A program made the position numbers and the translations under genes. The notes beneath the pieces are model-generated. The model did not search any database. It saw nothing but the letters and a program-made list of their open reading frames with translations, and was not told the DNA's origin. Positions 8,440 through 57,967 of a stretch of DNA of 64,000 nucleotides are shown here, piece after piece. The stretch lies in assembly GCF_006345805.1 (NCBI RefSeq), contig NC_043000.1, positions 53,010,001-53,074,000 on the forward strand, in the 5' to 3' direction. Source of the DNA: Octopus sinensis (lineage: Eukaryota). How positions within the stretch are numbered: position 1 is the first letter of the stretch; each line of letters starts with the position of its first letter.

Positions 8440-11400
8440 TAATATGACTAATTAAACATTTTATGTAGACATTTCCTTTTGTTTTTGTATCGCATTTAAT
8501 GGCAAAATTGACATTTTCGCTAAAATATGAATGTTTGTGAAAACACTTGAGTTCATAGAAAATTTCTGAGAGCCTTTCTGATCTCAGCTCCATAATAGGT
8601 AGAACTAATTGTAAGAGTCAGAGCAACTGACAGAAATTTTTGAGAATAAATATGAAATGTCCTAGTCGTCTAAACATACCTATCCACTGAAGACACCAAA
8701 GGAAGTACGTAAAAGAGAAACGTACATTGGTTTAGATAATTATTTAAAATTACTCTGTACGCATATTGAATTTTAGGATTTACTGCACTAATTACTTGTG
8801 ATTGAATTGGTAAATGAAGGCAGGAAAAATTAATTCATTTCCGAATTAATATTGATTTCACTAAATTTTGCTTTCCGTAAAAGCAACGGCATCTATGCAG
8901 AAATAATAGTATGTAGCATAATATATATATTATTGCCGCAATCATCTTCAAAATCTAACCACATTTTGTATATCAACAGATATGTCTGATGTGCACATTG
9001 CTGCATATAATCATGCAGTATGTAATAAAATAGCATAAAACAATTTACACATGGATGATATGCTTTTTTCGTAATATTGATAGCAATTAGATTAAATGTC
9101 GACATGGTTTCGTGATTACGAAATTTGATTTGAAATGATGTAGTTCCAAGATCGATACCACCGCTTCAAAAGTGTTTGGTATATGAGAATCCGATATTTC
9201 ACAGAACACAATTTGATTTCTATTGCTCTCCCCCTGTCTATCTTAATCCTCTTAAATATGTATATATATATACATACACACACACATATATATTTATACA
9301 TTGTGCAATGGTTTCTTTGATCAGTGATTAATTGGGACAAAACAATAAGTTCAACAGAAGCAGTCCAGGTGTGTGCGTGTGTGTGTGTGTAATATTCACT
9401 ATGTTGTTCCGTAAATGAAATATAATAATGTAAAGTAATTTGATTATCTACAGTTTCTATTACATATATCCTTTAGTCACAATCAAACTCTGATTGAGTG
9501 GACCCCATAATCAAAGGTATTCGATCTATGATAATTGTTTCATTCTTCTAAATGTAAACAATTAAAATAGTAGAGATTGATTTGGATATTACTGTTATCA
9601 GGTAGTGTAATTACGTAGATGATTCTTTGTTAATACAATGCATTCTTTTCTACCTTATATAACAATAAGATATGCAATTTCTTAATCAAGAATAATGAAG
9701 TTTTATTATATCACTTTCTTTAGATACTCTACATTTATCATAGCAATTAAAAAACAAAAATCAATATGATGTCTTTTTACAAAGGAACACGAAATTGTTC
9801 GCTATCACAAAATTAAGAAAGAATATTTTGTATTGGCAAGAACATATAGGAAATTGTTATCTCCAATAATGATCCTATTTTTCTTTTAATTTAAGCATTC
9901 ATGTATGCTGGAAATGGTAAAATACGGCCCAAATAGCAAGCACTATTGGATGAGTTGCCATCATTTTCAATGCTATTGAAGTTAAACTTGCTGTTCAGTA
10001 TGACAATGAGACTGTAATATATTATTTAAACTATTGTCCTTGGTTGTTCTGACGTTTTTCACTTGAGTCTTACATCCACAAGGCACTGGAAATATATACT
10101 CCAAAACTATTTCTTTTTAACATACGAGGCTCACCAGCCTTTGACCATACAACGCTCATTTGCACATTATGTGCAAAAGTACTCCCAGTCACCGAAATCC
10201 AATGAGAATACCAGCTTTTATTACCCTTAAACATTTGTCTTCCAAATTATTCAATCTTACCTCTTCTTTCGATAATTTCTTTTCATCAGGGTTATATCCT
10301 GACCATTTAATGCCCGTTTAAGTTTATTTCAGAAGAGATAGTGCTGCCGTTTAGAACAATCCGTTTTAACACGACCGTTTCTGTTTCATTTTCTGTCTCA
10401 TATATCTACACAGTGTGTTTTCACTCTCGACAAATCTGATGAAAGCATTCGTGTTTCCCACAAAATCTTCCCATAATATTATGCTTTTGTCTCATTGCTG
10501 CAATGCAATGTCTCTAAATGTGTTTATTTTCTACTAGGGAAATCGTATACTTTGATAGTATTATTTATTTCCTTATATTGAAATTTAGAAATTCATTTAT
10601 TGAATATTGGTAAAGTGTACACGGTTACTCTACTTGCTGGAAATACGGGCAAAAATCTTCCCACTTATGTGAATCCAAATTTCATAAAAGCTAAAGGACA
10701 GATTTTACAATGCCGGTTAATGTTTTCAAAAAATTTAAATGCTTACGGATGAAATCCATTTGTTCGTAGAATGTCTCGAGAAAAGATACCCATGTGATAT
10801 AACGGAAGGTTGCACCTCCAGAAGATAATATATAGAGTAAGCTCAAAGAGGAAAAACAGTCTAAATTAGAGATGGGCATATAATAACATTTTTGAGAAGA
10901 TGAGAAACATGTGGATATTCATCGACATTCGATACAAACTTTTCAGAGATCGTGAGGTACTCAGGGGAAACGGAATGAAGGGTATCGAGAGAAAGAGATA
11001 ATGACGGCTTGAGGAGTTGGGGAAAATCGTAACTAAATACATGTGGAAAATTTTGATTTCAGTACTTTTCTGTTGAAATCTGAATTAATATTGAGAAGAA
11101 AATGTTAAATCTTTTCACTGAATTGTGGTATTTTCTACTCATGGAATATCTCAAAACGAAGCAAAATGTATTTACGTTAGAGTGTATTATACAATTTATA
11201 TTATAGTTTATCAAACCATTTGAATGTGCTAAGCAGAATGCGTTTGCCGAGTAAATGCTAATTCTTTCTCTCAAAATAATAAGATAAAGTTATATTTCGG
11301 AATGGTCATTACAAATTACAGAAGCTACACACATAATAGAAGATAAACCTAACCTGAATAGGAAACTGGAATGGAACACTAGCACCCACCACAACATATG

Positions 11401-12221
11401 ACGGTAGAGGATCCCCATATGCTGGTTACAATATAAACAAAACCGAAAACATAATAAATAAGATACACAGATATATAAACAAATAGAAATAAATAACTAT
11501 ATAAGTATTTTTGTTTAATTTAAAATATTTTTTGATTTATTATTATTATTACTAGTATTGTAGTTATACATACTTACAAGCATACGTAATAATAATAATA
11601 AGTGGATGTAAACACATGAACAAAATAAGAATAAACAAAAACAACAATAAAAACAAATTACACGAATGTATATAAACAGAAGATACAAATATTACAGGCA
11701 TCCCCCCAAACACACTAACTAAACATAGACGCACATAGAGATATAAGCATGCGCAAATGAAGACATACAATAGAAATACAAAATGGCTGACGGTTAGTAA
11801 GGAGAGACACAAATAAGAAAGAAGTAAACAAAGGACCACTGATGCGGTCTCAGGAGTGTGACGAAAGAACTCTGGCCGAAATAAGATTAAGATTAATGTA
11901 AAAAAATAAATAACACTGAAGCAAAATAACACCAAATATATAGTGCGTGTGTTTTCATTGGCTAAACTGGCAAAATGACCATTCCGAAATATAACAATAT
12001 CTGTTTCAACACACGACTTCACATAAAAAATCTTGCAAAACAAATATATAAACATAATAAGATAAAGATTATGTTTGTAAATTACATTAGCATTACGCTC
12101 AATAGTTGTCGGATACCCTGCGAATTTAGAGCAGTTAATTCAAATCACCAAGCAATAGTATGCCCAAAGTGTGAAGCAGTGAAGGGCCAATTACTCCCGC
12201 ATACACACACACACACACACA

Positions 12222-13690: not shown

Positions 13691-15461
13691 ATATATATAG
13701 ATAGATATAGATATAGATATAGATATATATAGATATATATATATATAGATAGATATAGATATAGATATATATAGATATATATATATAGATAGATATATAT
13801 ATGCGCATATTTTTCATGTATTACAATATATATAACATAAGAATACATTAAAATAGATTGATATTTTCGTATATTCTTATGTCACATATATTATACACGC
13901 ACGTACAAACACACGCACGCGTTTTCTTGCGTATATATATATGTATATATCTATGTGTGTGTGTATAAATTACATATGTATATGTGTGTAAATATGTCGT
14001 TATGTATCTATATATCTCCATACATACATATATATATATACATATATATATATGTGTATGTGTATGTTTGTATAGGCGTATGTATATTTGTATATATGTG
14101 TTTGTATTAGTATCAGTGCGTATCTAATAGTCATCCTTGTTTTATCGGAGATTTTGTTCATATTTTTATAGGTACCTTTGTGTTTTCATATTGTCGATTT
14201 GCATTGTTTTCCCTTTCTTTTTCTTTTAACCCAAATTGTATTTGCGCAAAATAAAACACACAAAAGTTTCAACATCAGACGAAGATAAAAAACAAAAGTT
14301 AAACAACAAATAGAATAAATACATAAAATAAAGCTTAGAACTTTAGCTTAGGAATGATAATAGAGACAATGAAGGAAATATGAGAGAAAAAAATCAATTA
14401 AACATTTAGATGCATTCATATTCAAATTATCCAATTAGCCTTTTTTTTCTTCAGATAATACTGTATAGTAAGCAATAAATTTATAGATATTTACATTTCT
14501 CCTTTCTCATAAACTAAAATATTTCACAAATCACCGCCCTATACATTCAGTCTTTTCAAGCTCACTCACTCGATGTTCATCATCTATCTCTCATTGACTT
14601 TCTTCTACCACTTCTCCTTGTCTTTTCTTCTTTTTCCTTCACATATCTTCATTTTCATTTTCTATGAAGGTATAACCCTCGTGTCTTTTATCTTTACAAT
14701 CGCAGCCGTTTCTTTGAACTATTTCTTTTAATAAAATCTTGCTTTTATTGGAGCAACATATTAGTTATGTGATTGTTTGCGTGTTTATATGCGAATCTGT
14801 ATAATAAACACATACACATATATATGTATATGTGCGTCTATGTAAGTATGTATACATAGATATAGCGCTGCTTTCATACGAAAATAAACAAAAGTCTAAA
14901 ACGCACACACACACGTGTTCGTTTAGATCAATATGTATACATCTGGGTGTAAGAAAATACTTGACTTTGTATGGGCATCGCATACGTATTTGACCACGAG
15001 TTCATATTTGTATATATATATATGAATTTTTGTTTGGCTGCTTATGCAAATGTATGTCTATTTGATGTCCAAACTCACGCAATGAGACATAGTGAGGCAC
15101 AGTTGTAGAAGTTTTAGCTGAAAAATATGCTGTTACTCTGAGTTTCAGTGCAGACTTTCGTGCTTTGATAAATTATTTGAAAGTAGACAACAATAACTTC
15201 AACTCATTATGAGATTCCAATTCATTCGTTTTAATAAATAATATTCTCCTTTCATATCTGCTGAGTATATATTCTTATATACTATTACCCAAACCCACCA
15301 AAAAAGAAATCACTCGTATTTTCTGGATTTTTCGTTAGATGGATACTTTGTATTAGACTACATTGTAAATGATTAATATGTGCAATGATAGCCAAGTCCA
15401 TAGGAGGAGCTTATTGAGTTAACCACACTATTCTCTGAAACCATATCATATACTAACCATG

Positions 15462-41594: not shown

Positions 41595-41797
41595 TATTCT
41601 TTACTCGTTTCTGTCATTTGACTTCGGCCATGCTGGATCACCGCCTTTAGTCAAGCATATCGTCCCCAGGACTTATTCTTTATAAGCCTAGTACTTATTC
41701 TATCGGTCTCGTTAGTCGAACCGATAAGTTACGGGGACGTAAACATACCAGCATCGGTTGTCAAGTGATGTTGGTGGGGACAAACACAGACACAAAC

Positions 41798-41854
<57 letters not shown>

Positions 41855-42012
41855 TACGACGGGATTCTTTCCGTTTCCGTCCACCAAATCCACTCACAAG
41901 GCTTTGGTCGGCCCGAGGATATAGAAGAAGACACTTGCTCAAGGTGCCACGCAGTGGGACTGAACCCAGAAACATTTGGTTGGTAAGCAAACTACTTACC
42001 ACATAACCACTC
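41595..42012 (-). mobile_element. tRNA-derived SINE family 2 (OR1/OR2 CORE-SINE-like) with internal (TA)n; uninterrupted copy
   Basis: Minus strand begins GAGTGGTTATGTGGTAAGTAGTTTGC...GGGTTCAGTCCCA (A/B boxes), then CCTTGAGCAAGTGTCTTC...; homologous to the split copy at 52925-57489. Confidence 0.88.
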
Positions 42013-42252: not shown

Positions 42253-42572
42253 GAGGGCGCGTGGCTTAGTGGTTAGGGCATTCGGCTCATGATCGTAAGG
42301 TTGTGAGTTCGATTCCCGGCGACGCGTTGTGTCCTCGAGCAAGACACTTTATTTCACGTTGCTCCAGTCCACTCAGCTGGCAAAAATGAGTTGTACTTGT
42401 ATTTCAAAGGGTCAGCCTTGTCACTCTCTGTGTCACGCTGATTATCCCCGAGAACTACGTTAAGGGTACACGTGTCTGTGGAATGCTCAGCCATTTGCAC
42501 GTTAATTTCACGAGCAAGCTGTTCCGTTGATCGTATCAGCTGGGACCCTCGTCGTCGTAACCGGCGGAGTCT
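42253..42572 (+). mobile_element. tRNA-derived SINE family 3
   Basis: GGCGCGTGGCTTAGTGGTTAGGGC (A box)...GAGTTCGATTCCC (B box), followed by TTGTGTCCTCGAGCAAGACACTT (V/Meta-like central motif) and a long body. Confidence 0.85.
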
Positions 42573-51391: not shown

Positions 51392-52328
51392 TTACTTATG
51401 AGGTTTCCAAACGATTTTTATTTGTGTCCTTGTGTAGCCTGATTCTGAGGCATTGGTTTTATCCGGGGGATTGCTTGCTGTGAATGCTTCTTTATCTCCC
51501 AGGAACGCCCCAAGGAAGTTCTATTATTCTCATTTTGGAATAATCTGCTATGTACATATATATGTTTATGATTTCAGATAAACGTAGATATTGTGGTCTA
51601 AGTAAATGGTGGCCTTTGTGTTTCGCAGAATCTGAATGGAAGACTGCATTTTCTCATTTATTCTTTCAAGGCAGTGTTCTGTATTCATCATGGCCACACA
51701 TGTGAATGACTGTATGGATACTTTATAGATATATTTAAAATTAGTGAATGAAATTGTATCTATCGTGGGTGTTCTGTATAATATTCTTTTGGTGATCATG
51801 TACCAACTTAACTTGTCTTAAAATATTGACATAAATCTTATAAAATAGGCTAGAAATAATAAGAAAGTAAGATGCTTGTGATACAACGTCGACAATCTTC
51901 TAGAGAAAACGTTTATTGTGACTACCCCACTAAATATAAACAAGTTCATAAGCGCCAGTTAGCGCTTAACGATTCAATATTTCAGACAAAAGTTTTCATA
52001 GGATCATATGTAGCAATCGGATCTACATTGTAATGAAGAAATGAACACTAAAATAAAATGCAAAACAATGGAAGTAGTACACCACTGGTGATTCAGGGGC
52101 GGGAGGCTTGTGCAAAAAAAAACTCTATCAATCAAAAGTTTTAAAGAAGAAACCGCTTGTATCATACATACCATAAAAGAGGGAAGCTAGCAAAAGTATA
52201 AGCGACTAATGTCGGTTAATTATCCAGAACAAAAACGAGTACTACAGCAGCACCACAAGTCCACGGAGAAAAATAACTCTTACTGCAATGTAAATGTAAA
52301 TGTATATATTTCCGCGTGTGTGTGAGTG

Positions 52329-52433
<105 letters not shown>

Positions 52434-52596
52434 AGAGTTTACGAAGAAAACAAAAGACGAAGACAGGTGCTGTACAAAGCAAACAGTATAACGCTCCGGA
52501 ATAGCAAACGTCTTTCACGTTTCGAGCCTACGTTCTTCTACAGAAAGGTACTCAGAAAAAACAAGGAGAGGAAAAAAATGTGTGTAGTGGCTAACG

Positions 52597-52661
<65 letters not shown>

Positions 52662-52924
52662 GTATATATATATGTATGTATAAAGTTATATTTTTCCTAT
52701 GAAATATATAGATTACTTAGAAGTGCTCAAGTCGAACCTGAAACGTTGACAGGTGAAATAAAAATATTTAAAAGTATAAAGTTAAAATTAGGAACACCAA
52801 TATCAACACTTATTTGTGCGGATTTGATGAAGATAAAATTCGTTACAAATTTAAAATATATCGATATACTGAACATAGAATAATATAGGAATATTAAAAA
52901 AATATATGGATCCTTTTATTCCGT

Positions 52925-53296
52925 TATTCTTTTACTTGTTCCAGTCATTTGACAGTGGCCATGCTGGAGTGCCGCCTTCAGTCGAGCAAATGGACCCCAC
53001 GACTTATTCTTTGTAAGCCTAGTACTTATTCTAACAATCTGTTTTGCCGAACCGCTAAGTTACGGGGACGTAAACACACCAGTATAGGTTGTCAAGCGAT
53101 GGTCGGGAGCAAATACGGACACACAAATGCATACACACACGCACGCATAATTATATGATGGGATTTTTTCAGTTTCCATCTGCCACATCCTGTCACAAGG
53201 GTTCTGTCGGTCCGAGTCTATAGTAGAAGACACTCGCCCAAAGTGACAGGTAGTGGGACTGAACCCAGAAACATGTGGTTTGTTAGCAAGCTACTT
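52925..53296 (-). mobile_element. SINE family 2, body and 3' part (split by the insertions)
   Basis: Collinear with 41595-41997; stops abruptly at ...GTTAGCAAGCTACTT. Confidence 0.88.
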
Positions 53297-55450
53297 TATT
53301 TCAAAACATTTGCCATAAAGGCAGTACACAGATTAAGTTAACTTTGCGGGCTGGACGAGGACATTAATGAAGTGAATGATAATGAAAGAAAGATGATAAG
53401 GATGGGAGAAGACAAAAAGCGCCCGCCGACTTTCGCTTCTCTAAAACATTGTTCTTTTTAAAGATAAACACAAAACGAGGTATTAAACCTCTTACAATTT
53501 TTCAATTTTTGGACTTAGCAGTCCATTACTAATAATAGCAGTTCAATAATTACATATCGTCCTCGAAATAGCTTGTGCCCGCGTCCTCCACCATCAACCA
53601 CGCCTCCCTCAGAACGTAATCAAGTTCCGAGTTTGCGTCGCCCGGGACCAAGTTATAATCTTCATTGAGCTCCTTTAGCCCAACCGTCACGTCGAACGCC
53701 ACGGCCTCCACAGCTACCTGCGGAGGCCATTCTGGGTCCTGTGTGAAGGCTAAAGGTGCTCCCTTGTGGTGCTCTTTCATCACCTTTTCAATTTCACCTC
53801 CTCTATAGAAGAGGACCAATAGTTCTTTCGTTGGCGGCACAGTTCCCGCCAACGGTATTCCTTCTCTTGTCGGTGGCACAACCCCAACCGACGTAGTTCC
53901 GGGACATTCCGGTGCTGTGTCACTGACAGCCGGCAATGTCCCGTTTTTCTTCCTCTTTTTCTTTTTTTTCCCTTTTCAACTGAGGGAGGGTACATCTCCT
54001 CCGTGGCCGGAAGATTCGCCTTCCTCTCCTCATCCCTATTATCCTTTGGTGAGCACCCATTGTTGCTCACCTTCCTCTTTCGGCCTCTGTTTGAGGAGTC
54101 CTCTGCTTTCTCGGCCGTTATCATTCCCTCTTCTAGAGGGGTTTTACTTAACTGTTCCGGGATCCTATTTTGTTCCCGGGGACAGTTCTTCTTTATGTGG
54201 CCGGACTCCAAGCACCGATGACACTTAGGGGGGTGACCCTCAAGCATCACCGGGTACCTGCACCCGGCCATTTTCAAAAAATCTGGAAGAACCAGATTGG
54301 CTGATTGGGTCCACAGGGTCAAAATTGCTTTTGACCCAACCCAAGCAGCCGCAGGAAGAACTTTTACATTAAGGAGCTTAGTTTCGCTGCCACCCAGACC
54401 CCGGCGGATAGTCTCCTCTATCCACTCGGCTTCTATGTCGGGTGGCAGTCCGCAAATCCAAGCTTTCATCAATTTCTTTTTTTTTGTACGTGGGCAGGAA
54501 TAAGATTCCCTTACCCTCCAGGGGTTTGCTAGCAAATTTGCAAGCCTCTTCAGGGGTGTCAAATAGCAACCACACCGTTGCATATTTGACACCCCTGGAA
54601 ATGAATTCAATTGTTGGCAAATACTCTTCCAACTCCTTTTCAATTGCCGTCTTTTCGAATAGGGCGATGGTGTCGAGTGCCTGGGAGTAGGTTCTCAACG
54701 CCACCGTCCTATCTTCACAATCTTTTAACCACTTTGTTATTTTTCATTGCCATGTTTTTTTTAAATATATTCAAATTAAACTCAAAAAGCAAGAAGAAAA
54801 AAGTTCAAAAATCCAAATAAAATTTGATAGATTTAAAAAAAAACAAAAAGGAGAAAGCACAACAGAAGGGAAGAATTCAACGGAAAGTCGCAATAAAGAA
54901 AAAAAAAACAAAAGGGGGGTTAAAATGAAGTTCAAAAGAAAGTTAATAAACAGAAAAAACACAGCAAAAATATTCTGGCCTTGCGGTACTCCCGGCCTGG
55001 GTTGAACCTGGAACGCCGCAACTGCAACACAACCTCCACAAAAATGGGTCCGAAAGGTAATCCAATAGTGGCTTATTTTTATAATTTTCTTGCGAAGTAC
55101 TCTGACAAGGGAATAAATTCAACAAACCCAAACACAGCACTGGCTACCGCAAACGGTAATTTTAACAGCAACTGTATTGAATTCCGAGGATACGCCCCTC
55201 CACTGTTTTTTTTTTTTTTCAATGAACACAAAAACGGCAGCCGCCGAGAGCAGGCGAAATTGTCTCAGAGTTGGACACAACTTACTGAAATAATAATTGG
55301 CACGCAATAAATTATGCCCAACTCACAATAAACAAAATCACTTACCTCGACAACTTTCCGTTTTTGGTCTTTTTTCTTTAATTGGACGGAGCTGGTTGAC
55401 TCGCGTCCACTCTGGCTGAACAGGAAGCAACTGACTAACTGCGCATGTGC
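53297..55450 (-). mobile_element. Element A: ORF1-only non-LTR retroelement (Tx1/L1-like), 2154 bp, 15-bp TSD
   Basis: Flanked by GTTAGCAAGCTACTT at 53282-53296 and 55451-55465. Layout is 5' UTR, one gag-like ORF and a 3' UTR homologous to element B. No RT or APE sequence. Confidence 0.8.
53550..54753 (-). pseudogene. ORF1-like protein of element A (~400 aa reconstructed across three single-base homopolymer frameshifts)
   Basis: Joins track ORFs 54378-54704, 53780-54643 and 53550-53936. Contains RRM-like WLLFDTPEEA and WICGLPPDI, the CX2CX4HX4C knuckle CHRCLESGHIKKNC, and a basic K/R patch. Confidence 0.8.
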
Positions 55451-55465
55451 GTTAGCAAGCTACTT

Positions 55466-57458
55466 TATTTCAACAATTTTGCCACTAGGGCAGCACACAG
55501 AGTAGCTACGGGCTGGACAAAGACATTAATGGATGATGGTGGTGGTGGATGAAGATGGTGATGGGAGAAGTCAAAAAGCGCCCGCCGACTTTCGCTTCTC
55601 TAAAACAATGTTCTTTTTTTTTCCAATAATTTTACAAAATTTTCCAAAATTTTTAAAAAATTCAAAAATTTCAAAAAAATTCCAAATTTTACAATTTACA
55701 ATTTCAGAAGTTTTTCCAGAGCAATAAACCTCTATCACAATATAACCCAAATACAGGTTCACGTTACCCGACCGATGAACGCTCTTGCTTTAATGACGCA
55801 ATCGTTCTTCGTCAGGCCCCCGCATATAGGTATAACTTGCAAGAGATCCTCCGGGAAAGAATTCTCGATCCTGCACATATCATTTTCGAGTAGGACCTCC
55901 GCAGCCAGCTGCGAAGGCCACTCGGGATACTCCATGCAGGACCGAAGTCCCTCCCATTGGTTTCTCTTCCTCATCTTACCTATTTCATTCTCTAATGTAC
56001 CTCCTTTGTAGAAGAGGACTACATAATATTTCTCCGGCCCCACAACCGCCGGAGGACACATGGGAGACGCCATCTGCGTGTTACAATCCGCTGGAGGCGT
56101 CCCGTTTCTTTTCTTTCTTTTTTTCTTTTTACCCTGGGCCACGGGAGGTTGAGGTTCCGGCGTTGCACACGCCGGGTCCACTCTTTCTCCCGTAGCTTCC
56201 GGGTCTTTTAGTGGGTCACCATTGTTTCCCACTTTTCGTTTTCTCGTTGAGGAAGTCACCGCTTCCTCGTTCTGTTTCTCTCCCTCCATTGGTGGGGCAG
56301 GGAGAGGCTCTGATATCAACTGCTCCAGGATCCTACTCTGGTCCCTGGGGCAGTTCTTCTTAATGTGGCCGGTCTCCAAACACAGGTGACACTTGGGGGG
56401 CGTCCCTCAAGCATCACCGGATACTTGGACCCGGCCATCCTCAAAAAGTCCGGCAAAACCAGACTCTTGGCTGACTGGGTCCATAGAGTCAAAGTAGCCT
56501 TTAACCCCTCCCAATCAGCCGCAGGCTGCATTCTTACGTTCAGGATCTTGGCGCTACCACCACTCAGACCCCGGCGGATAGAATCTTCCACCCACTCGGG
56601 CTCAAAGCCGGGTGGCAGGCCGCAGACCCATAATCTTATTAATTTTTCTCCCTTGTAGCTTGGGAGAAACAAAATCTCTTCGCCCTCAATGGGCTTGCTT
56701 GCGAAATTGCAAGCTGCTTCAGGGGAGTCAAACAGCAACCAAATCGTTGCGTATTTGGCTCCCCGTTGAATGTATTTAACGGCTGGCATATAGTCTGCCA
56801 GCTCGTTCATAATAGTGGCTTTCGGAAAAACCATTATGGTGTTGAGTGACTTTGAATAAGTTCTCAACACCACGGTTTTGTCCTCCAGCTCCTTCAGGTA
56901 ACTCTTCGGAGGTGTTAACTCCCATATGGTTAACTCCTTTGCCATAACAAAAGTCCAATAAGAAAAAAACACAATGACAGAACAGAAAGACAGAGCAGAG
57001 AAAAGGACGAAGGAGGACAGTTCAAATAATGGCAACACAGTTCTGCAACTGGTAATCCTCACGAAACAGGGTACTCCAGTTGCAGCACACTTGGTTCTCC
57101 GTGGTAAATCCAAGCACAATTGGTTCTCCGTGGTAAATCCAAGCGAACAAATTAATTTTTGAGGAGGGGCTATGCCTCTCAAAACACACAATTCTCACTA
57201 AAAGGTGAGACAATAAATATGCCAACAGGCAGAACAAATACATCCGAAGCAAAGTGAAGCCTATTACGCGCAGAAAAATGTTAACACTAATTAACATTAA
57301 TGCCAAAAAAGTATTAACGGCAAGCAATAAACCTCACTATGCTTCCAAAAATATCCAAAATGTCCTACCTGTTGCCGTAAAATGTTCAATAATTCACGTT
57401 AACACGTGACATTTGCCGGAGCAGCAAAAAAACACGTCTGAACAGGTCAGAGGTGAGA
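55466..57458 (-). mobile_element. Element B: ORF1-only non-LTR retroelement, 1993 bp, 9-bp TSD
   Basis: Flanked by AAGCTACTT at 55457-55465 and 57459-57467; same architecture as element A. Confidence 0.8.
55759..56945 (-). pseudogene. ORF1-like protein of element B (~395 aa; one frameshift in a G6 run at ~56395-56400)
   Basis: MAKELTIWE...WLLFDSPEAA...WVCGLPPGF...EGRPP/KCHLCLETGHIKKNCP...GKKKKRKKRN...VLFYKGG...PEWPSQ. Confidence 0.82.
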
Positions 57459-57489
57459 AAGCTACTTACCACACAGCCACTCCTACGTC
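57459..57489 (-). mobile_element. SINE family 2, 5' head (A-box part) of the split copy
   Basis: AAGCTACTTACCACACAGCCACTCC continues the SINE exactly as in the intact copy (AAACTACTTACCACATAACCACTC, 41989-42012). Confidence 0.85.
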
Positions 57490-57967
57490 TATAATACATA
57501 TGAGTGTAGAAACATAGAGGTAATATAGTAAAATACAAGAATATAGATGAGAACGCTCTCAGAATATTTGAAAAGATAATGGAAAGTTAATAATTGACGT
57601 CTAATAAGTTTCGGGTTACAATTTCAAATGATAATATTCCGACGGCCGTTTCTGGGGTTCATTCTTCTGGGTAAAAACTTAATCTTGAAAAAGTTAAATG
57701 CATTCAGTGCATTGCCAAGGTAGGAAGAATCACAAGCTCATATAAAGGAACAGTTATATGTATGCAAATAATGGTGGTCTTTATGAGGGCTGATGGGACA
57801 AAAACTACGTTACTTACATAATATATTGAAATGTATATTCAGCAATATATTGTTATAAGTAATAAGATATTAAATTGTGCGACAGAAATTACTAAGGCTA
57901 ATTATTGACTTATAGAATCTCATGACAGTTAGAGTAATATCTGTGATTACACGAATAAATAGTGTAG

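Follow-up and report, generated by a model that had tools for sequence, protein, structure and literature searches.

HeT-A, a non-LTR element (LTR, long terminal repeat) of Drosophila telomeres, encodes only Gag/ORF1 (ORF, open reading frame), with CCHC knuckles and no reverse transcriptase (RT). It belongs to the Jockey clade, is target-specific for chromosome ends, forms head-to-tail arrays, is thought to use the RT of TART/TAHRE, has a Gag that contributes to targeting, and has been co-opted for a host function. HAL1 is an ORF1-only derivative of a long interspersed element (LINE), served by ORF2p in trans and of repeated origin (PMC5753468). LINEs of the Tx1 clade, which belongs to the L1 group, target microsatellites, small RNA genes and other transposons; Tx1-Mar LINEs and SINEU-3 of crocodilians, and Tx1L/Tx1D of Xenopus, use a fixed site in another transposon family with a target site duplication (TSD) of ~16 bp, and non-autonomous dependants such as SINEU-3 share their partner's target and form tandems 'sandwiching a TSD' (PMC4494074). 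Octopus vulgaris reportedly has 13 recently active L1-Tx1 families (PMC13282606). In the literature searched, we found no cephalopod description of an ORF1-only family that targets a short interspersed element (SINE). Here we analyse a 64-kb stretch of Octopus sinensis DNA (hereafter the window; contig NC_043000.1, positions 53,010,001 to 53,074,000), in which two ORF1-only elements, A and B, lie one behind the other in the head of a single SINE. We put at roughly 0.75 the probability that they belong to a site-specific, non-autonomous, ORF1-only derivative of octopod L1/Tx1-like LINEs that is mobilised in trans, and that they are two independent copies lying together because insertion regenerates the target.

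Two insertions at one position of a SINE

Coordinates are positions in the window, and the elements and their host SINE all have the minus strand as their sense strand. On that strand the order is SINE head, AAGTAGCTT, B (1993 bp), AAGTAGCTTGCTAAC, A (2154 bp), AAGTAGCTTGCTAAC, SINE body. The features are as follows.

41600..42012, minus: intact SINE of the same family as the host SINE, with an empty target between 41997 and 41998
52930..53281, minus: 3' body of the host SINE (a ~400 bp SINE with a tRNA-like head and an internal CA/TA microsatellite), downstream of the insertion site
53282..53296, minus: target copy 1, GTTAGCAAGCTACTT (sense AAGTAGCTTGCTAAC), SINE sequence adjoining the 3' end of A
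53297..55450, minus: element A, 2154 bp, ORF1-only
53297-53549, minus: 3' untranslated region (UTR) of A
53392..53459, minus: conserved 3'-UTR block of A, 91% identical to that of B over 68 nt, 53/55 in the core
53550..54753, minus: ORF1 of A, with two modules resembling RNA recognition motifs (RRMs), a CCHC knuckle (54182-54226), a lysine/arginine-rich linker and a C-terminal extension
54754-55450, minus: 5' UTR of A
55451..55465, minus: target copy 2, GTTAGCAAGCTACTT, between the 5' end of A and the 3' end of B
55466..57458, minus: element B, 1993 bp, ORF1-only
55466-55758, minus: 3' UTR of B
55551..55618, minus: conserved 3'-UTR block of B
55759..56945, minus: ORF1 of B, with A-like architecture and a CCHC knuckle at 56350-56394
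56946-57458, minus: 5' UTR of B
57459..57467, minus: target copy 3, AAGCTACTT (sense AAGTAGCTT), the 9-bp duplication at the 5' end of B
57468..57500, minus: 5' head of the host SINE, including an A-box-like TGGCTGTGTGG; the A box ends 1 nt before the insertion point

The 15-mer GTTAGCAAGCTACTT is present exactly twice in the window, at 53282 and 55451. Its last nine bases, AAGCTACTT, stand at 53288, 55457 and 57459, and CTACTTTATTTCAA at 53291 and 55460. The intact SINE, which is the sole other copy of the family in the window, shows the empty site, ...AAACTACTT^ACCAC... (carets mark junctions throughout), and the flanks of the host SINE, when joined (~400 bp), are 81-82% identical to it. As read from the sequence, the insertion point lies ~30 nt before the B-box-like GGTTCAGTCC of the SINE. 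No LTRs or terminal inverted repeats were found in A or B, and Rfam and tRNA scans returned no tRNA, the sole match being a chance mir-155-like one (E=0.054). The arrangement proposed in a preliminary description of this DNA, with two inserts at one base of a SINE, TSDs of 15 and 9 bp and an empty site elsewhere, was confirmed.

A and B are independent insertions. Their DNA can be aligned only over ~490 bp of the ORF core (77% identity) and 115 bp of the 3' UTR (83%), and the 5' UTRs and the remainder of the 3' UTRs give no alignment. A DNA-level tandem duplication is thereby excluded, in keeping with the preliminary description, whose hand count of ~65% identity between the core proteins compares with a computed 66%; over 343 aa, the conceptual proteins are 50% identical. 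There are three frameshifts in the ORF1 of A (at ~54704-54726 and in A-runs at 54467-54494 and 53938-53977) and one in that of B, in a C-run (56385-56408). A is older than B, or at least more decayed.

Two close relatives in the protein database, P0001 and P0002, each led to a further copy, and two further homology searches gave no close relatives besides these. Copy C, from O. sinensis (L001), is annotated as the protein-coding gene LOC115225585; its 5' junction, GGTAAGTAGCTTGCT^TCCTGTGCATGCG, falls in another copy of the host-type SINE head, in unchanged orientation. Copy D, from O. vulgaris (L011, OX597833.1), is a complete 2.0-kb B-type element, 95.5% identical to B over 1997 alignment columns, with an intact ORF of 378 codons. 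Its ends agree with those of B in their first bases (TCTCACC), their last bases (...TTGAAATA) and the 9-bp duplication AAGTAGCTT. The SINE copy that hosts D has its own sequence, and its outer flanks are unlike those in the window.

The 3' junctions of A, B and D fall on the identical base, and the 5' junctions of A, B, C and D all lie within 6 nt of each other. All are in one (sense) orientation, in three different SINE copies and in at least two species. The target of A-D, GTGTGGT^AAGTAGCTTGCT, directly follows the A box of an abundant tRNA-like SINE head: the host SINE family occurs 29 times in 43.6 kb of the O. vulgaris locus L011, and the 190 kb of DNA that we sampled contains 20 target-like sites, 17 of them unoccupied. 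The shared junctions represent site specificity and not chance. The target specificity first proposed for A and B is upheld by the flanks of C and D, which show the same SINE position and orientation at other loci. A metagenome scan with the 19-nt 3' junction produced eight chance matches, with no further similarity.

No similarity to ORF2 was found in the window, nor around C, D or a more distant element, E, described below. Because B and D have common termini and no ORF2 at unrelated loci, the 2-kb ORF1-only unit itself has transposed. That they are alike in termini and in ORF2-less structure at two loci favours the earlier proposal of an ORF1-only unit over internal deletions.

Several further observations concern D, the 5' UTRs and the SINEs. 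In O. vulgaris, a gene model named 'repeat and SAM domain-containing 1A' (P0002; L011:6001-37579) starts inside D and borrows its first exon from the element, whose C-terminal extension makes up residues 1-27 of the model; the model leaves D at a consensus donor, ATAG^GTAAGA. B has this donor too (~55975-55990, minus strand). Either the annotation is wrong here or the element drives a genuine chimeric transcript. The 5' UTR of B contains a 29-bp tandem duplication (97% identical, 57084-57141), of which D has one unit, and the 5' UTRs of A, B and C each have a GT-AG-like donor ~100 nt from the 5' end. At the 5' ends of A (first 12 nt, 55436-55447) and C (L001:9491-9500) there is a GCACATGCGCAG / GTGCATGCG motif, similar to an NRF1-type palindrome, which may be part of an internal promoter. 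We also considered whether the element 5' ends are SINE-derived beyond the TSD, and the alignment was unconvincing except for 7 nt in B and D. A different tRNA-like SINE head (GCGTGGCTTAGTGGTTAGGGCATTCGGCTCATGATCG) begins at 42262-42300, ~250 bp from the intact SINE.

The ORF1 protein and its octopod relatives

The CCHC knuckle (CX2CX4HX4C) reads KCHRCLESGHIKKNC in A and KCHLCLETGHIKKNC in B. In Pfam, zf-CCHC scored 17.1 and 15.3 bits for A and B, under the 20.8 cut-off; this was the only domain hit in either protein, with no RT or endonuclease domain. The same domain was matched in 12 of 29 family members, and no other Pfam domain was matched in these 29 relatives. RRM_1 and DUF4283 gave no match in A, B or the 29 relatives, and Transposase_22 none in the A and B proteins. 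Tblastn with octopod ORF2 found no match in the window, and no RT-like or endonuclease-like ORF was present among its other ORFs of at least 130 aa. The preliminary description had held that each element lacks RT and endonuclease, and the Pfam, tblastn and ORF surveys all agree. Long listed 'ORFs' at 694-1098 and 52326-52883 are microsatellite or low-complexity artefacts ((ATT)n-like and (TA/TATA)n) and not genes.

We modelled B residues 1-210 with AlphaFold2 (AF2) from a 29-sequence alignment. The model (predicted local distance difference test, pLDDT, 89) has two beta-alpha-beta-beta-alpha-beta modules and the knuckle; an earlier structure prediction from a 3-sequence alignment was unusable (pLDDT 33). 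The top Foldseek matches of the model are tandem-RRM proteins (Raver1, IMP3 RRM12, Prp24, UP1, Hrp1 and Npl3), with E from 2e-4, probability 1.0 and template modelling (TM) scores of 0.28-0.39, which are low, as expected, because the two domains are mobile.

In a search of 1.84 billion representative proteins with a profile built from A, B and C, we obtained 70 matches. Where a source could be traced, it was mostly octopod (O. bimaculoides, O. vulgaris, O. sinensis and Argonauta hians). C was the one close match, and the others are 20-29% identical to the B ORF1 core. Several of these homologues could be placed in their genomic context. At an Argonauta locus (L003), the ORF1 homologue (10001-11584) is followed, 39 nt further, by ORF2 (from 11623), which carries Exo_endo_phos, RVT_1 and zf-RVT domains and whose best solved-structure match is human L1 ORF2p (4e-42, full length). 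At an O. sinensis locus (L002, CM016872.1), ORF1 lies directly upstream of an ORF2 with Exo_endo_phos and zf-RVT, in which tblastn revealed a decayed RT region. An O. vulgaris locus (L012, OX597840.1) likewise has the ORF1 homologue directly upstream of ORF2, the ORF2 copies being identified by tblastn, and in a Logan contig (L004) the homologue is followed by the start of an apurinic/apyrimidinic endonuclease (APE).

Type I ORF1p, found in plant L1 and animal Tx1-type LINEs, has at least one RRM and a CCHC knuckle (PMC5203782). The A/B protein is predicted to fold in this way, and the genomic context of its homologues settles its identity as a LINE ORF1p. With a tandem RRM, a CCHC knuckle and homologues upstream of ORF2, it is a LINE ORF1, as originally proposed, rather than a host gene or an LTR gag. 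Beyond this architecture, the A/B/C/D proteins share an extra conserved C-terminal region of ~90 aa (LVLFY.GG...PEWP.Q.A.E; 53550-53830 in A and 55759-56030 in B), which the preliminary description did not include. The extension has no relative in the profile search, where matches stop at about profile position 300, or in Pfam.

The coding sequence has clearly been under purifying selection. For comparisons among the A, B/D and C subfamilies, 183 core codons gave ratios of nonsynonymous to synonymous substitution rates (dN/dS) of 0.20-0.23, at a dS of 0.8-0.94. As decay after insertion can raise dN/dS but not lower it, the ORF must have been subject to purifying selection during the divergence of these subfamilies; this is the comparison that the preliminary description had suggested. 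B and its sister copy D are ~5% apart, with 2.2% divergence in the ORF and ~7% (estimated) in the UTRs, and across the whole ORF dN/dS is 0.42, with a synonymous excess (p=0.03). The C-terminal extension, over 43 codons alignable between A and B, also gives a dN/dS of 0.42.

The autonomous relatives resemble A, B and D in their 3' ends, and the A-D family in some of their habits. Their 3' end has no poly(A) and reads GCCCTTGTGGC.AATA.AGAAAT; that of A, B and D, GCC.T..TGGCAAA..T.TTGAAATA, also has no poly(A), and the tail motif is common to both. L003 has a clean 16-bp TSD. L012:2400-17026 is a head-to-tail array of three full-length ORF1+ORF2 LINEs, with a unit of ~5.28 kb and junctions of the form ...GGGTAAATAAAATAAAACAC^TGATAAGGACG. 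The decayed relative at L002 lies within an (ATT)n microsatellite, with repeats on both flanks (L002:9700-9790 and 15345-15375), in what looks like microsatellite-specific targeting. The SINE target was occupied by none of the relatives examined (L002, L003, L012 and a LINE fragment in L001). A Tx1-like placement is suggested by the L1-superfamily features of ORF2, the ORF1 type and the target-specific behaviour, rather than by a tree of the RT; the behaviour matches the pattern published for the Tx1 clade (PMC4494074). Since A, B and D have no ORF2, they can only be derivatives and not autonomous members of the Tx1 clade.

ORF1-only derivatives recur in this octopod LINE lineage, as the A-D clade and, separately, as element E (L013:7916-9652, O. 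vulgaris OX597833.1). E is 1737 bp long, distant from A-D, and flanked by a perfect 10-bp TSD (GCTGGGTTCG); it has an intact 379-aa ORF1 (P0011) of a distant subfamily and a lineage-type tail. Its 3' UTR is full of TTGTAAAG-type tandem repeats. In the autonomous relatives, a consensus 5' splice-site-like sequence, AAG^GTAAGT, lies right before the ORF2 ATG (L012:9325-9345 and L004:1845-1860), and a weaker AAAG^GTAGGT lies in the gap before ORF2 at L003:11570-11600. E keeps a splice-site-like ACG^GTAAGT directly after the ORF1 stop (L013:9150-9160), and because it retains the GGTAAGT motif of L004 and L012 it looks like a simple ORF2 deletion. Such a motif might serve in splicing, U1 binding or re-initiation. 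We found no GTAAGT remnant or exon-junction signature after the ORF1 stop of A, B or D.

Mobilisation and rival explanations

The mobile unit is ~2 kb long: a 5' UTR precedes a single ORF that encodes a Type I ORF1p (two RRMs, the CCHC knuckle, a basic linker and the clade-specific extension), and a 3' UTR of 250-290 nt follows, with a conserved, putatively hairpin-forming block and the lineage-typical tail (GCC.T..TGGCAAA...GAAATA), which has no poly(A). As it lacks endonuclease and RT, it would be copied by target-primed reverse transcription (TPRT), with ORF2p provided in trans by a related autonomous LINE, and its ORF1p would probably coat its own RNA in cis. Insertion is specific for site and (sense) orientation, directly after the SINE A box. 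A constant first-strand junction combined with a second-strand offset that differs between copies (9, at least 12 and 15 bp) is what TPRT usually leaves behind when the first nick is specific. Since the target is duplicated whenever an element inserts, another can follow next to it, which gives a head-to-tail pair with a target copy between. We infer mobilisation in trans, who the partner is and how the target is recognised, whereas the structure, the independence of A and B, the common site of the four copies, the ORF1 nature of the protein and purifying selection are direct results. The non-autonomous, ORF1-retaining, SINE-targeted family of the preliminary description is supported by the four copies, by the ORF2-less A, B and D, and by the ORF1 homologues.

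Two features of the 3' end bear on how the RNA may be recognised. Between A and B, a 55-nt stretch of the 3' UTR has only two mismatches (53/55) and is predicted to form a 14-bp hairpin (GAGAAGCGAAAG...CTTTTTG.CTTCTC), which was viewed in three sequences of which two are nearly identical. Such conservation beside an ORF that is 77% identical suggests a cis-acting RNA element, which would most simply be the recognition site for the partner's RT. Furthermore, AATAAA occurs just once towards the 3' end of A, B and D, where four bases at the end of the element meet two at the start of the target, unlike in E and the autonomous relatives, where AATAAA lies 7-13 nt inside the element. Transcripts of A, B and D should therefore run into SINE sequence, and such SINE-ended transcripts might pair with the nicked target in a further SINE, as read-through transcripts are known to do for other site-specific LINEs.

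It is possible, though on the unlikely side, that A, B, C and D represent an old, self-sustaining ORF1-only lineage, its protein under selection throughout a deep split into subfamilies (dS about 0.9), in which specificity is borne by the element and not by a partner's endonuclease. SINE-ended transcripts would then guide priming by base-pairing with any SINE head, and the clade-specific extension of ORF1p might assist. If this were true, a parasite of a LINE would have acquired an RNA-guided targeting system of its own, with a SINE as safe haven, and the interest of the family would be higher if its own RNA or ORF1p proved to be the carrier of specificity.

Several points weigh against a trans-mobilised, site-specific family. 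The sample is four copies, reached through protein databases rather than by a genome census. A, B and C are all broken copies, and C has lost its 3' third, so that the lack of ORF2 is read from A, B and D. The element boundaries can also be drawn differently: with AATAAA spanning the junction, the 3' boundary is ambiguous by a few bases and could be placed further right, and since B and D begin with TCTCACC, similar to the 7 nt with which the SINE continues (GCTTACC), the 5' boundary of B could sit 7 nt further in. No autonomous element with the A/B target or 3'-UTR block was found, and the nearest ORF1s linked to an ORF2 are those only 20-29% identical to the B ORF1 core, which leaves the partner hypothetical. 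The ORF2 homology search returned only unnamed relatives and no named Tx1 reference. Two candidate origins for the C-terminal extension within autonomous LINEs also failed: as the C-terminal domain of an autonomous ORF1 it had an hhalign probability of 0.3, and as a relic of the APE N-terminus it gave weak BLAST matches (VLFYKG/VLFRKG) and was negative with a lineage-specific APE hidden Markov model.

The main rival explanation is that A, B and D, instead of propagating themselves as an ORF1-only lineage, are recurrent by-products of unseen autonomous masters, one per subfamily, whose ORF2-less RNA, internally deleted or spliced, was occasionally retrotransposed in cis-proximity. Spliced L1 copies are a precedent for the occasional retrotransposition of ORF2-less RNA, E is an unrelated case within this lineage, and the splice-site-like motif before ORF2 in L004 and L012 (weaker in L003), of which E keeps one, also speaks for this origin. 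The purifying selection between subfamilies could equally have acted in autonomous masters, and HAL1 arose several times in mammals (PMC5753468). However, among the 1.84 billion representative proteins no ORF1 more than ~29% identical to the A/B core is linked to ORF2, and the only close relative is copy C, apart from P0002 with its borrowed C-terminal exon from D. The C-terminal extension and the near-identical 55-nt block of A, B and D are absent from the sampled autonomous relatives, and the trace that E retains after its ORF1 stop is missing from A, B and D. That no masters were seen counts for little, given that genome annotation masks repeats; on balance we judge this origin to be unlikely. 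More improbable is that the A-B tandem came from one TPRT event, in which the RT switched from A RNA to the 3' end of B RNA; B RNA would have carried read-through SINE sequence from its donor locus (AAGUAGCUUGCUAAC), and the composite's true TSD would be the 9-bp AAGTAGCTT. The composite's outer repeats are consistent with a 9-bp TSD, the junction-spanning AATAAA implies transcripts that end in downstream SINE sequence, and template switching in LINE retrotransposition is documented (PMC4494074). Against this, the three frameshifts in A and one in B hint, in small numbers, at different ages, the full-length relatives at L012 show the array habit too, and TSD-sandwiching tandems are expected from repeated site-specific insertion and have been described as such for SINEU-3 (PMC4494074). 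The sequence is compatible with either model, including the sequential insertion of the preliminary description.

A host or domesticated RRM-CCHC gene, with processed pseudogenes copied by some LINE, might be suspected from the annotation of C as LOC115225585, and from the intact ORF of D, part of which serves as the first exon of a gene model. Yet all four copies have one insertion site in common, their tails are of LINE type without poly(A), their TSDs vary, they fall into three deep subfamilies, and their homologues are the ORF1s of APE-RT LINEs. DNA-level tandem duplication, the related proposal for the A-B pair, is effectively refuted by the 77% core identity and unalignable UTRs. Together, we regard these two explanations as extremely improbable.

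Significance and comparison with known systems

The family provides a natural test of the role of ORF1p, in that an element with no enzyme of its own keeps ORF1 under purifying selection while depending on a foreign ORF2p. It also represents layered parasitism, in which a LINE derivative exploits LINE enzymes and lands inside a SINE that itself exploits LINEs, and each insertion puts 2 kb between the A and B boxes of the SINE copy that is hit. For site-specific LINEs in general, it raises the question of whether target choice resides in the endonuclease, the 3' end of the RNA or ORF1p, and the intact copy D in O. vulgaris offers material to work with. A practical point concerns octopus annotation, where such elements currently pass for an ordinary gene (LOC115225585) or supply exon 1 of a SAM-domain gene model.

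The proteins of A and B are like Type I ORF1p, in the classification of Khazina and Weichenrieder, in their predicted tandem RRM and knuckle, but differ in having no Pfam RRM or DUF4283 match and in their extra C-terminal extension. Like HeT-A, the elements are Gag-only, target-specific and arrayed. Unlike HeT-A, A-D target an internal sequence, and no host function is suggested for them. The likeness to Tx1-Mar and SINEU-3 lies in transposon-targeted insertion, in a shared target and in TSD-sandwich tandems. The dependants in those systems are non-coding, SINE-like RNAs and the targets are DNA transposons, whereas the A-D dependant encodes a selected ORF1p, its target is a SINE head and its partner is hypothetical. 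HAL1 is similar in being ORF1-only, non-autonomous and of recurrent origin, which is paralleled here by the A/B/C/D clade and the unrelated E. However, HAL1 has a Type II (Transposase_22) ORF1, poly(A) and no sequence specificity, whereas A-D have a Type I (RRM-RRM-CCHC) ORF1, a specific non-poly(A) tail and a specific site. Thus, with neither Transposase_22 nor poly(A), the A-D family works like HAL1 but is not a member of it.

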